A stretch of 64,000 nucleotides of DNA from Octopus sinensis (GCF_006345805.1 NC_043020.1:25358001-25422000); one strand, 5' to 3'. Positions 30,848 through 60,105 are shown, counted from the stretch's first letter. Notes: generated from the letters alone by a model not told the origin. Made by a program: numbers and translations.

Positions 30848-31035
30848 TCTCTCTCTCTCTCTCTCTCTCTCTCTCTCTCTCTATATATATATATAATATA
30901 TATATATATATATATTATATATATATATATATATATATATATATATATACAACACAATTGCAGCGTGGAAGGTGTTTATAAGCCATTTAAGAAACACACA
31001 AAAGCCGTTCGATTCACTTCAACATTTAAGTTTAA

Positions 31036-31085
31036 TTTGTCAAAATATTTTCGTCGCTAAAATCCGCGACCTGTTCACTGACAAA
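31036..31085 (-). ncRNA. Mirror copy of the G3-C8 hammerhead
   Basis: Exact reverse complement of 31104-31153. Confidence 0.75.
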
Positions 31086-31103
31086 GTCCGATGCAGCACG
31101 GAC

Positions 31104-31153
31104 TTTGTCAGTGAACAGGTCGCGGATTTTAGCGACGAAAATATTTTGACAAA
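31104..31153 (+). ncRNA. Minimal type I hammerhead ribozyme, G3-C8 core variant
   Basis: Helix I TTTGTCA/TGACAAA; core GTGAACA+G; helix II GTCGC/GCGAC; GAAA; palindromic helix III AATATT; UUU triplet, predicted cut after 31146. Confidence 0.75.
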
Positions 31154-32134
31154 TTAAACTTAAATGTTGAAGTGAATCGAACGGCTTTTGTGTGTTTCTT
31201 AAATGGCTTATAAACACCTTCCACGCTGCAATTGTTTTCGTTTCAGCACACGATCTCAGATCAAATTACTTGCTATGCGAGTACATCTCCGTAATATATA
31301 TATATATATATATATATATATATATATATATACGAGCAAAACGCCCCCCATCCAATGGACGGTGCTGAGTTGTCAAAGATTTAAACCAAATTTTCTCAAA
31401 ACAACTTGTCCGACCGTCCCATAGGCCTCCTCTTTGAGAAACACTAATTTAACCTAAATTTGAAACACCAGCAAAAGAAGAAATAAAGATTGACTTTTTT
31501 TTTATTCCAAAGAAAAACGATTTTATTCACACAAATATGCAACCGAAGAGTTTAAAGTACCAGTAATGATAAGGCTGTTGACTACGAGAACACAAACATG
31601 GTTTAAACAGTAAGCTTGGCAGGAAAGAAACGTACCTTTAAGCAGTACAAAAACAATAAAAAATGGAAGATGCAGTTATGTACAGGTTGACGGAAGAAAG
31701 GTAGGACAAAAACGCCTTTATCGATCGCATTCTCACCTGGAATCGAATTTTGCAATTTTTTTCAAGAGTTATACAGTCCTGATACCGTCGGTATCTACAT
31801 ATCAAATTTGGGCGCAATCGGATGGAGGATGCCCGAGATCCTAGAAGACACACACGAATACAGTATTTCTACTTCAGGTGGTACATTTTTTATTGTGACT
31901 TTTGTCATCCTCTGGCCTAAATAGGTTGGTATCATCACCAAGTCATCTGTATGCAGATCCAATGTGGAAAATCGTTTCGCTAGATTTTCATTGTGGAAAC
32001 TTACTTGGATTGTGCCAAATTTATGCCACCAACTAATGTATTCCTTTGAATCCTATACAGGGCGAAGGTATTTTCAATTTTTTGCTGCGGTGCACTTTCT
32101 GGTCGTCTTGTCTTCTTGTTGATAACTTTGTATA

Positions 32135-32506
32135 TTATTGTTTTTGTGTGTTTTGCACGATGTGTTGTGGAATGTGGAGATGCAATTTATCTCCTTCTTT
32201 GGTGAGGAGTGCCTTTGTGTGGTTTATTTCTTGCGCGGTGAATTTTACGATTGTTTTCTTTTGTTTTATCGCTTCCGCGAAGTTTGTTTTATTTTTGGTG
32301 CTGTTAGTGGTAGAGGAGTTAGTTGTAGCAGTTGAAGTCGTGGTAGTAGTATTGGTGTTGGTGGTGCTGTCTTCGGAGGGCGGCTTTGTGCTGATTTCAA
32401 TGTTGTTGGTGGTGGTACTGGCATTCATGTTTGCGTCTGTATTCGTTTGTTTTGAAATCCCTTTCTCCGTCCGGATCTTTTCCTTTTGAACGGCACTTTG
32501 TAACAT
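32135..32506 (-). other. Possible LINE ORF1 N-terminal fragment
   Basis: Thr-rich low complexity followed by NFAEAIK..LLTKEGDKLHLHIP; lies just downstream of the Tx1 3' end on the same strand. Family not established. Confidence 0.25.
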
Positions 32507-32559
32507 AATTTCTAGGTAACTAAAAAGTTTTAAACTTCGTATACTGGTAGAATGTGTTT

Positions 32560-33745
32560 ATAAAACATCATTTTCTCGTGGCTTTATTGAGAAAATTCTG
32601 TATGTTGTAAGATATTTCGTCTTTAATTTCGAGCATTTCGTCAATTTTAACCAGTCGCTGGGGGAAAAAAGGGCGGGGGTATAAAAATAAAAGCAAAAGG
32701 AAAAAATCGATCAATAGGGATCGTTATCACAGAAATGTCAATATAAAGTGTAAAGGGGAAGACAGGTGTGTTTTACCCGTGGAAAGAAAAGCCTACGGAA
32801 AAGACCACGGTAACCTCGGTCAATGAAGTCACATGTTATATTTTTTTTACAAATAAGCAACTCTCTGTATTAATTTTTACGGTTCATAGGATCATACTCA
32901 AGGTGGCTTCGTCATTCATACGCGCCATCCTTGCTACATTCACCCATCTTTTTTTAAAACATTCACTAGACAAAACTTGCCTCTCTACTCTCACTTTCCT
33001 CTTCAAGTGATACTTGAAGAAGTTGATGAGTGATTGACCAGAGAGGAAAGTGTTTGTATCTAATCCTTTCAGGCGCGTCCACCAGATACATTCTTTCGCC
33101 ATAGCCACAAGTATGATGAAAATAGCTCTTCCTTCCCGTTTGAAGGAAGGAGGCGTGACGATATTAACGATAGACTCGGCTGGTAAACCGACACGTCCCA
33201 CACGTGACAGCAGTCGTTCGACATAAGCTCACAGGTCGGAGATTGTTGGACACTGCACGATTGCGTGCAAAATGGTTTCGTCGCTCTGCCCGCATCTCGG
33301 GCAGGTCGGCCCCGTGTTTCTCGAGCCATGCTTATAGAGCTTATCCCGAACGGGTAGCGCTTCTCGGTAGCACCGCCAGGCTAGAGATCTTTGGAAGTTG
33401 TCCATAGGTCCCGGCCCGAAAGTCGTTTCAAACAGGCGGGTCAGGTATTCCTCGTCGACGCCCAGGTTTGCCCCAAGATCGTCGTCGTACCTCCCCTCCA
33501 CTAATCCCCCATAGAATGCTTTGGTTGTGTTGAAGTCAATCAAGGTCGACCCGGGACGGCAGAGTTGCTTGAGAGCAACGCGACACTCGCGGTGCCATTC
33601 GCCCTTCCTCGGCCTCTTTTTGATCCACGACTGCAGTTCGGTCATGGAGACGGGCTGCGGGAAAGCGTGCCTCACAAACGGCGACCACACCTGTTCACCG
33701 TCGTCTACATAGAGCCGGAGAAGTCGCAGTCTCAGCGCGTGTCTG
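32560..33745 (-). mobile_element. Tx1/L1-clade LINE 3' end with C-terminal zinc-binding (zf-RVT-like) domain
   Basis: LAWRCYREALPVRDKL..TCPRCGQSDETILHAIVQCP, continuing to ..MNDEATLSMIL* at 32884; 5' truncated at a GA/GATA repeat. Confidence 0.85.
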
Positions 33746-58100: not shown

Positions 58101-58220
58101 CTCTCATGCACCAAATAGCAGTTGCTAGAAAGCCTCCATGAAGTGAAACCAAGTAGCAACACCAAATGGCGGTGCCCCAGCATGGCCACAGCTCATAAGC
58201 TGAAACTAGAATCAATCAAT
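55120..58220 (+). mobile_element. CR1-clade LINE ORF2 (APE endonuclease + RT), frameshifted, with (ATCA)n tail
   Basis: IALTET..HGGVAMYIRED (EN); NYRPISLTS..QHGFRPGRSC..GVPQGTVLGPLLF..YADDTK (RT); tail GAAACTAGA(ATCA)n. Confidence 0.95.
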
Positions 58221-58774
58221 CAATCAATCAATCAATCAATCAATATATATATGTATATATATATGTATATGTATATATATATGTATATATATATGTATAT
58301 TGTTTATGATATGTATATATATATGTATATATATATATGTATATATATATTATATATATATTATATATATATATGTATAGATATATGTATATATATATAT
58401 ATATATATATATATATATATATATGTATATTTGTATTTTATATAATATATACGTATATATGATGGACTCACCTGTCGTTAGGTGACGTATGAGGGTTCGG
58501 GTATTTCTTATCGAACAACCACACAAATGATTTGTTCATAGTGATCAACTGTTTTTGAAGACATATGCTCACTGCCTCTATTAGATCGACATGTCAGATG
58601 ATAAAATGATCGTAGAGCAACGTGAAATGAAGTGCTCAACGCAACGTCCGGTCTGGGAATCGGACCCACGATCTTACACCTTAACCACTGAGCCATGCAC
58701 CTTCACATATATTTATTTCAAATATAATGCTTATTTGTTCACTCATTGTTTTAAATTAGTTTTAAATACAAGGG

Positions 58775-58965
58775 GCTAAACTTAGAGGGGACAAAGAAGG
58801 ATAAACTACGGGATTAAATCGATTACATTGACTCCAGTGCGGAACTGGTACTTATTTAAACGATCCTGAAAGGATGAAAGGCCAAGTCGACCTCGGCGGA
58901 ATTTGAACTCAGAACGTAACGGCAGACGAAATAAAGACGAAAACGGTTTTGCCAGCTCACCGCCT
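58775..58965 (-). mobile_element. SINE family B
   Basis: Family B module. Confidence 0.8.
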
Positions 58966-59256
58966 CTGCCTTCACATATATTAACAGGCTTCGGGTGCAA
59001 GGCAAAGAAAAAAAAGCAGGTGCAAATACATCACCTGTACTCACCTGTAATCCACATTCTTGCAACATCTGTGACCTCCTTTGCATATACATATACATAC
59101 ATATATATACAAATACACACACACACACACACACACACACACACACACATATATATATATATAATAAATCCTTAAAAACCGAGGAACACAAAAAACAACG
59201 CGAGGACGTGGTACACGTAAAGTATTAGCAGACGCTCAGGGAAGGAAAGAAAGATG

Positions 59257-59291
59257 GATTAACGTTTCAAGCAAAGCTTTTCTTCAGAAAC
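59257..59291 (-). ncRNA. Degenerate minimal hammerhead (CUGAAGA core)
   Basis: GTTT CTGAAGA A AAGC TTT GCTT GAAAC GTT / AATC. Confidence 0.45.
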
Positions 59292-59404
59292 AGGAAAGTC
59301 CAATAGAAAAGGAAGACGGAGAAAAAAATACGCCAACGATTCACATGTGGTTATATATCTATAGGGAGAATTTACGAAAAAACAAAAGACGAAGACACGT
59401 GGTG

Positions 59405-60105
59405 TACCCACAAACCCCAACCCCCAGCCGAACCCACACCCCACCCGTGCTTTCCCCACTCTCGCCTCCCCACCTCCCAACAACATCACACCACACCATA
59501 TTACACCATACATTACACATCCATCACAACACACCATACACCTATCCCCACATCTTCACACCTACACATACATACACGCACACGTCCAGACCACCAGCCC
59601 TCTTTCACACGCACATACATACTCTCTTATACACACACAGATGTATTAGTATAACACTCAAGAACAGAAAAATCTTTTACGTTTCGAGCCTACGCTCTTC
59701 TACAGAAAGGGACACAGAAAAAACAAGGAGAGAAAAAAATGTGTGTAGTGGCTAACTATCTATCATGGCGACTAGTGCCGGACAGACGGGTCAAACACGA
59801 GGAGGAAAGTAGGGGAGATAACAAGGTAAAGATGACCTCCAACACAAAGGTACCCCCCAACACAAAGGGGCGTGTGTTTATGAGAGATTATGTATGTGCG
59901 TGTGAAAGGGGGCTGGTGGTCTGGACGTGTGCGTGTATGTGTAGGTGTGAAGATGTGGGGATGGGTGTGTGGTTGGTGTGATGTGATGTGTAATGTTGTA
60001 TGGTGTAGTGTGGTGTGGTGTGATGTTGTTGGGAGGTGGGAGAGGCGAGAGTGGGGAAAGCACGGGTGGGGTGTGGGTTCGGCTGGGGGTTGGGGTTTGT
60101 GGGTA
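59405..60105. mobile_element. ~233-bp inverted repeats flanking an HHR-bearing spacer
   Basis: Arms ~59405-59637 and ~59871-60105 are near reverse complements. Confidence 0.8.
59674..59709 (-). ncRNA. Minimal hammerhead-like motif, A6U core variant
   Basis: CTTT CTGTAGA A GAGC GTAG GCTC GAAAC GTA / AAAG. Confidence 0.5.

Follow-up and report, generated by a model that had tools for sequence, protein, structure and literature searches.

Penelope-like elements (PLEs) carry minimal type I hammerhead ribozymes whose very short, palindromic helix III implies that they act as dimers (Cervera and de la Pena 2014, PMC4209133). Their hallmarks are a nucleotide left unpaired between 9 and 10.1, a G10.1-C11.1 pair and the palindromic helix III; a U3-A8 variant of the core, an extra nucleotide after position 9 and motifs that come in opposite-strand pairs, separated by a few hundred bp, were all published in 2014, and most copies are dispersed and single or truncated (PMC4209133). 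Metazoan non-LTR (non-long-terminal-repeat) retrozymes are AT-rich tandem repeats of 150-450 bp with a type I hammerhead, and their circular RNAs are self-paired (Cervera and de la Pena 2020, PMC7229834), and dependence on PLEs has been proposed for them (Li et al. 2026 preprint, doi 10.64898/2026.07.22.740005). Here we compare both systems with elements in a 64,000-nucleotide stretch of Octopus sinensis DNA (GCF_006345805.1, NC_043020.1:25358001-25422000), called the window, whose positions are counted from its first letter. These elements are short, non-coding, mostly in contact with (TA)n tracts, and contain hammerhead motifs or remnants of them.

The insertions left by PLEs have an architecture of their own: they comprise tandems that are partial, with an inverted 5'-truncated copy beside them, and a 30-40-bp tail on one side only, and several clades target (TA)n (Craig et al. 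2021, PMC8557442). Purified PLE protein cleaves the two DNA strands and extends each of them, and reverse transcription starts at two internal AC-rich RNA sites, the spacing of which equals the tail (Frangieh et al. 2024, PMC11167929). In the same work, templates with a dead hammerhead still inserted, and an engineered C3G/G8C double mutant partly restored cleavage (PMC11167929).

An earlier note on this DNA had named seven hammerhead elements, here E1 to E7, and inspection of the sequence found an element at every one of the places; E8 and E9 are two further insertions. As far as the sequence allows a judgement, they are probably short, non-coding and non-autonomous retroelement insertions of the Penelope-like or non-LTR-retrozyme kind. 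In each, a minimal type I hammerhead motif would stand at the 5' end, with about 90-240 nt of 3' sequence after it. E1, with a G3-C8 core, and E2, with a U3-A8 core, would be recent intact copies and E4 a partly intact one, while E3, E5, E6, E7 and E9 would be decayed or truncated relics.

Two families matching the strict hammerhead descriptor

The strict descriptor of a minimal type I hammerhead required a Watson-Crick 3-8 pair, U4 G5 A6, and A9 with an optional extra purine. It further required a helix II of at least 3 bp, G12 A13 A14 A15.1 (GAAA), a loop III of 2-10 nt, U16.1, H17 and a helix I of at least 5 bp. Both strands of the 64-kb window (128 kb) were scanned, and chance levels were taken from dinucleotide-preserving shuffles (n = 1,500). 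Two families only, E1 and E2, match on either strand. Shuffling gives an expectation per window of 0.14-0.15 strict loci of any grade, 0.019 of E2 grade and 0.003 of E1 grade, and an E2-grade match with a palindromic loop III appeared in 0 of the 1,500 shuffles. When the 12 non-Watson-Crick 3-8 combinations were substituted, the strict descriptor had zero matches in the window. A descriptor allowing any Watson-Crick 3-8 pair had been proposed in the earlier note for a genome-wide search; run on the window, it recovers E1 and E2 and leaves the other five sites unmatched. The claim that every element folds as a minimal type I hammerhead holds, by the strict descriptor and by unconstrained folding, for these two; E4 has no helix II, and E3, E5, E6 and E7 are defective.

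E1 forms a palindrome of 288 bp that begins in (TA)n, with arms of 140 nt that are 99% complementary. The inverted copy (30951-31090, minus strand) adjoins the (TA)n tract at 30882-30949 and holds a hammerhead motif at 31036-31085, with H17 at 31043. The centre of the palindrome, read directly from the sequence, is ATGCAGCA (31091-31098), and the direct copy (31099-31238, plus strand) follows with its motif at 31104-31153. The right arm is followed by TTTCG, not by TA; a one-sided 58-nt tail (31239-31296, plus strand), which contains the AC-rich motif CGTTTCAGCACACGATCTCA common to the tail of E3, leads to the next (TA)n. In the direct copy, helix I pairs UUUGUCA (31104-31110) with UGACAAA (31147-31153) over 7 bp. 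The core GUGAACA (31111-31117) gives the G3-C8 pair and is followed by an extra G at 31118, a 5-bp helix II (GUCGC/GCGAC, within 31119-31136) and GAAA at 31137-31140. Loop III is the palindromic AUAU, with U16.1 at 31145 and U17 at 31146, so that the predicted cut falls between 31146 and 31147. Because position 17 is U rather than C, a G3-C17 mispair would be avoided. All three hallmarks of PLE minimal hammerheads are present, namely the unpaired nucleotide after position 9, G10.1-C11.1 and the palindromic helix III, and the unconstrained minimum-energy fold is the hammerhead three-way junction (z = -3.4).

E2 consists of a tandem array of 5.7 units of 362 bp with 96% matches (35213-37267, plus strand) and an inverted, 5'-truncated copy of 208 nt (35004-35211, minus strand) joined to it head-to-head. 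The inverted copy holds a hammerhead motif at 35173-35214. Both outer ends lie at CTATTAT within one (TA)n tract, the 3' end of the inverted copy adjoining (TA)n at 34917-35006 and that of the array also adjoining (TA)n. The two 3' ends are 63 nt apart in unit coordinates. Within the array, full motifs lie at 35572-35613, 35934-35975, 36642-36683 and 36995-37035 and partial ones at 35216-35245 and 36297-36324; counted over 35173-37035, inverted copy included, there are six full and two partial motifs. Cuts are predicted after 35245, 35607, 35969, 36324, 36676 and 37029.

The E2 motif reads GCUGCA / UUGAAAA / GGGG-CAAUA-CCCC / GAAA / CGCG / UC / UGUAGC. Each unit thus has the U3-A8 core UUGAAAA and a helix II of GGGG/CCCC, followed by GAAACGCGUC. 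Helix I has 6 bp and helix II 4 bp, and the unconstrained fold is again the hammerhead three-way junction. G10.1-C11.1 and the palindrome ACGCGU occur in every unit, the extra nucleotide in the unit at 35934 and following ones. For the dimer, a double hammerhead with a 6-bp ACGCGU helix III is predicted. The monomer RNA is predicted to be strongly self-paired, at -127.9 kcal/mol compared with -88.7 +/- 5.3 in shuffles (z = -7.45), and its helix I extends beyond the descriptor minimum to about 20 bp, closing the molecule. The fourth and fifth units (36294-36997) contain many single-base deletions, mostly in homopolymers, which look like long-read consensus error and not like divergence.

E2 resembles metazoan non-LTR retrozymes (PMC7229834; doi 10.64898/2026.07.22.740005) as an AT-rich 362-bp tandem with one type I hammerhead per unit, a strongly self-paired monomer closed by helix I and a proposed dependence on PLEs. 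Among the elements it alone combines a tandem unit of 150-450 bp, a GC content below 50% (41%) and one type I hammerhead per unit. It differs from those retrozymes in its core, UUGAAAA instead of CUGANGA, in that helix I/helix II loop contacts are not identifiable, in the inverted partial copy attached to it, and in the position of the array in (TA)n.

Compared with PLE minimal hammerheads (PMC4209133), the window elements are alike in the type I form, the very short palindromic helix III, G10.1-C11.1, the U3-A8 covariant, the opposite-strand pairs and the mostly dispersed, single or truncated copies. They are unlike them in helix lengths (helix I 6-7 bp and helix II 4-5 bp here, 4-5 and 7-8 bp in the published ones), in the G3-C8 core of E1 and in having no adjoining PLE open reading frame (ORF).

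Insertion architecture and a proposed mechanism

An inverted, 5'-truncated copy beside a direct or tandem copy occurs in E1 (99%), E2, E3 (93%), E5 (71-72%) and the E6/E7 complex (92%), which bears out the earlier count of five. Most elements do touch (TA)n, as their flanks confirm, and the target is AT-rich or (TA)n. Partial tandems, the inverted 5'-truncated copy, such a target and, at a shorter length, a one-sided tail are likewise features of PLE insertions (PMC8557442; PMC11167929), from which the window elements differ in being non-coding and only 200-360 bp long.

E1 and E3 share the same layout, and their one-sided tails of 58 and 56 nt are homologous. The tail motif CGTTTCARCACACGAYYTCA, common to both, has 2 matches in the window against 0.03 expected, and the tail has no copies elsewhere in the window beyond these two. 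The tail of E2 was compared with them as a possible homologue, and the likeness was not convincing. In E1, E2, E4 and E5, 0-20 nt separate the hammerhead core from the inner (5') end of each copy, which is upstream of it. At the other side, the 3' end is about 92-98 nt downstream of the predicted cut in E1, E6 and E9; in the anole PLE it is 85-92 nt downstream of the cut site.

Two short sequences recur at element boundaries. The 8-mer ATGCAGCA, which contains the palindrome TGCA, stands at the inverted junctions of both E1 (31091-31098) and E2 (35206-35213), elements that are otherwise unrelated. The RNAs may have had the same 5' end, or TGCA may have served as microhomology for joining. At one end of each of E4 (47611), E8 (13535) and E5 (49847), the heptamer GCAATAA directly adjoins (TA)n or a TA-rich sequence. 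Its orientation relative to the element differs in E5, and its recurrence may be chance.

We propose that a source copy or array would be transcribed and that two motifs would pair through the palindromic A15.1-loop-U16.1 segment, giving a double hammerhead able to cut after H17. Monomers of 362 nt would thereby be freed from E2 transcripts, and the extended helix I, about 20 bp long, would keep their ends together so that they could circularise, as metazoan retrozymes do. Both strands of a (TA)n tract would then be cut by a PLE reverse transcriptase/GIY-YIG endonuclease encoded elsewhere in the genome. Complementary DNA (cDNA) primed from each strand at one of two internal RNA sites would yield a head-to-head inverted and direct copy with a one-sided tail, or, from a multimeric or circular template, the tandem array of E2. 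Both cDNAs would reach the RNA 5' end, 0-20 nt upstream of the hammerhead core, and be joined there. Such a course presumes mobilisation in trans by PLE proteins and, for cleavage, variant G3-C8 and U3-A8 cores that would be catalytically competent. The inserted copies hold uncut hammerheads; their templates were therefore not cleaved at that motif, and the ribozyme may not be needed for insertion.

Weaker elements and their surroundings

Once the requirement for helix II is removed, E4 joins the matches, giving three independent families (E1, E2 and E4) compared with 0.13 expected. The conserved core (U4 G5 A6 N7 A9, G12 A13 A14, A15.1-U16.1, H17) is present in E1, E2, E4, the right arm of E5 and E6, and is broken in E3 (A9 to C), E7 (A6 to U) and the left arm of E5 (U4 to C). 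A core-only descriptor would find 2.7 loci per window by chance; for this reason, neither E5 nor a match at 60373-60468 is significant by motif alone. By the motif alone, E3, E5, E6 and E7 are not distinguishable from chance; they resemble hammerheads but are defective or truncated. A loose descriptor (any 3-8 combination, any position 9, one mismatch in each helix and a helix II region of at most 140 nt) was dropped as uninformative because it gave dozens of matches across the window and zero at the five weaker sites. The string at 60373-60468 (CUGAGGA...GAAACGUACGUA) is probably a chance resemblance; it lies in unique AT-rich DNA, its helices have 3 bp, and both (TA)n and an inverted copy are lacking.

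Several features named in the earlier note are borne out: there are C3-G8 cores in E4, E5 and E6 beside the G3-C8 of E1 and U3-A8 of E2, an extra purine after position 9 in E1, E6, E7 and some E2 units, and a short palindromic helix III (AUAU in E1, CGCG in E2 and the forms given below). E4 (47611-47850, minus strand) is a single copy between TA tracts, without an inverted copy. Its motif (47794-47838, minus strand) comprises a 6-bp helix I (CGUACG/CGUACG), the core CUGAUGA with C3-G8, GAAA, the helix III palindrome CUGCAG and UC, with H17 at 47800; in place of a helix II there is CGAGUUAAUAUCCA.

E3 (37741-38022, minus strand) has arms of about 82-86 nt (about 37741-37822 and 37935-38020, 93% identical) around a 110-nt centre. 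The one-sided 56-nt tail homologous to that of E1 follows at 38023-38078 (plus strand) and is succeeded by (TA)n. The defective motif at 37855-37899 (minus strand) reads CUGAUGC, in which A9 has become C, then G, helix II GUCAC/GUGAC, GAAA, GAAC and UU; its loop III, GAAC, is non-palindromic. E5 (49508-49846) comprises two inverted copies that are 71-72% identical overall, with a C3-G8 core and the helix III palindrome CGAUCG. Its right arm (49714-49797, plus strand) reads CUGAUGAG...CGAAACGAUCGUC and its left arm (49554-49651, minus strand), in which U4 is replaced by C, CCGAUGAG...CGAAACGAUCGUC. The two arms are homologous from the core onward, and the 5' strand of helix I is therefore absent.

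The E6/E7 complex (59164-60105, minus strand) includes an inverted repeat (59405-59638 and 59872-60105, 92%), and its end at 59164 adjoins (TA)n. E6 (about 59256-59293, minus strand) has the motif CUGAAGA A AAGC UUU GCUU GAAACGU U with C3-G8, and only about 2 bp of helix I adjoin the core. E7 (about 59664-59702, minus strand) reads CUGUAGA A GAGC GUAG GCUC GAAACGU A, with A6 changed to U. Both have the extra purine and a palindromic helix III of CG. They are homologous, and their helices II, AAGC/GCUU and GAGC/GCUC, differ by a compensatory U-A to C-G change.

A third, diverged copy of this family, E9, lies at 8560-8726 (about 76% identical) and ends in (TA)n; it retains GAAACGUC, the CUGANGA core and helix II being lost. 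E8 (13535-13966), which lies outside the range covered by the earlier note, is a palindromic element in (TA)n with arms at 13637-13772 and 13831-13966 that are 97% identical, and with a one-sided left extension of about 100 nt (13535-13636).

The surrounding DNA is eukaryotic and AT-rich, with many (TA)n and (CA)n microsatellites, repeats resembling short interspersed nuclear elements (SINEs) and reverse-transcriptase fragments of long interspersed nuclear elements (LINEs). The two reverse-transcriptase ORFs look LINE-like, with best matches 50-67% identical; the one match with an informative name, a jockey-like reverse transcriptase from Octopus, is 62% identical over 52% of the query. An assembly gap (49929-50028) lies inside or beside the (TA)n tract at 49897-49928, about 80 nt to the right of E5. 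No hammerhead motif and no element arm in the window contacts it. To the right of the gap is the end of a 2.2-kb LINE-like repeat, whose two inverted copies (50029-52200 and 58182-56014) are 96% identical, with an RVT_1 domain at 57142-57723. A degenerate (TA)n tract of 2.9 kb (52264-55120) separates these copies, and each of their outer ends also adjoins (TA)n. An ORF across the gap (49547-50089) is spurious, and its reading frame is irrelevant because all of the sequence at issue is non-coding. A spurious 74-aa ORF across E2, used as a protein query, had 0 matches.

Other repeats of the window include identical 148-nt stretches at 20470-20617 and 21496-21643, 1,026 bp apart, which mark a direct duplication of about 1 kb. 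SINE-like repeats at 45970-46310 and 58770-58935 are 87-90% identical and locally duplicated, and further SINE-like copies lie at 8842-9281, 37535-37700 and 42327-43528.

Alternative origins and significance

Several observations weigh against an origin of these elements as Penelope-type or retrozyme insertions. The earlier note had suggested looking for an autonomous element with reverse transcriptase and GIY-YIG domains, and within the window none was found: the 98 ORFs of at least 75 aa include no GIY-YIG domain and no recognisable PLE ORF, and the reverse-transcriptase fragments look LINE-like. The elements would therefore have to be non-autonomous. No independent genomic copies were found, the E2 pattern having 0 matches in metagenome contigs and the E1 pattern 0 in viral contigs. 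The tails, at 56-63 nt (56-58 nt in E1 and E3, and a difference of 63 nt between the E2 ends), exceed the 30-40 bp described for PLEs, and a conserved stem-loop in the E1/E3 tail motif was sought and not found. Four of the seven elements named at the outset are defective, and E8, a similar palindrome in (TA)n (13637-13966), is without a recognisable hammerhead motif, so that the motif is not universal among such insertions. The Rfam hammerhead models had no match at the gathering score, nor at E <= 10 over 31 kb, where both scans returned microsatellite-driven miRNA look-alikes only. At E <= 10 they also had no match in 81-121-nt slices with E1 or E2, a scan that had no known-PLE-hammerhead control for minimal, helix-III-less forms. 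Finally, less activity is to be expected from cores with G3-C8 or U3-A8 than from those with C3-G8.

It is also possible, though quite unlikely, that E1, E3, E5 and E8 are miniature inverted-repeat transposable elements (MITEs) or foldback DNA transposons that target TA, for example derivatives of Tc1/mariner, in which the hammerhead-like motifs are incidental nested stems. Long terminal inverted repeats do form most of each element, E3 can be read with TA on both sides, and E8 looks alike yet lacks a hammerhead motif. This origin would not account for E2, an inverted copy plus a 5.7-unit array whose outer ends are not mutual inverted repeats, nor for the right arm of E1, which ends without TA and is extended, on this side only, by 58 nt that are homologous to the extension of E3. 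A pattern of terminal inverted repeats at both ends flanked by a TA duplication does not fit E2 or E1 and is compatible with E3, in a comparison that is weak inside (TA)n. Moreover, a chance hammerhead of E1 or E2 quality is expected only 0.003-0.02 times per window.

For E2, the tandem form and the progressive divergence of the units would also fit a satellite DNA that is transcribed and holds a hammerhead, like newt satellite 2, and that unequal crossing-over, not retrotransposition, has amplified. The other sites would then be unrelated chance motifs, of which the core-only expectation of 2.7 per window would supply some. We consider this explanation improbable. The 208-nt inverted copy stands head-to-head with the array, and both outer ends, at CTATTAT, lie in one (TA)n tract, which indicates a single insertion event. 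In addition, E1 and E4 are independent matches well above chance, and E1 has the junction 8-mer ATGCAGCA in common with E2. That the near-perfect palindromes are foldback chimeras of long-read assembly is very improbable: arm identity is 99% in E1 and in the E2 inverted copy, the single-base deletions of the later E2 units are typical of a noisy consensus and an assembly gap is near, but the arms have diverged elsewhere (E3 93%, E5 72%, E6/E7 92%, E8 97%), as artefacts would not, and the junctions fall at a specific motif position.

Penelope-type insertion thus remains the reading that we prefer. The earlier proposal of several non-autonomous PLE or retrozyme lineages is supported by the insertion architecture and by the agreement of E2 with the definition of a retrozyme, and it is weakened by the presence of an intact motif in only two or three of the seven elements. 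The responsible PLE might belong to any of the clades Neptune, Naiad, Hydra or Poseidon. The elements are real but of a largely known kind: passengers of Penelope type that have minimal hammerheads, one of them a retrozyme-like array.

The C3-G8 pair is nearly invariant in natural hammerheads. The earlier suggestion that the variant cores are undescribed does not stand for U3-A8, which was published in 2014 for PLE hammerheads (PMC4209133); for G3-C8 alone, known from the engineered, partly active C3G/G8C mutant (PMC11167929), the searchable literature, which did not take in all work on PLE hammerhead variants, yielded no natural example. The G3-C8 core of E1 is the one detail that may be new, the feature being otherwise largely known.

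A more far-reaching idea, which we regard as unlikely but worth stating, is that E1 is a natural functional hammerhead with an inverted G3-C8 pair. Covariant cores such as G3-C8 and U3-A8 might then be used by (TA)n-targeting Penelope lineages and their passengers, which would explain why Naiads were reported without hammerheads by CUGANGA searches. In that case, ATGCAGCA and the AC-rich tail might mark the recognition sites of one PLE.

For this genome, the consequence is mostly one of annotation: short palindromic or tandem repeats in the (TA)n tracts here would be Penelope-type passengers that contain hammerhead motifs, rather than MITEs or noise from assembly. The intact, uncut hammerheads in what appear to be fresh insertions, with 5' ends just upstream, fit the in vitro finding that PLE insertion needs no ribozyme cleavage. 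A natural G3-C8 core, if true, would widen the variation of the hammerhead active site in nature beyond C3-G8 and U3-A8, and would argue for descriptors that allow any Watson-Crick 3-8 pair in genome screens.

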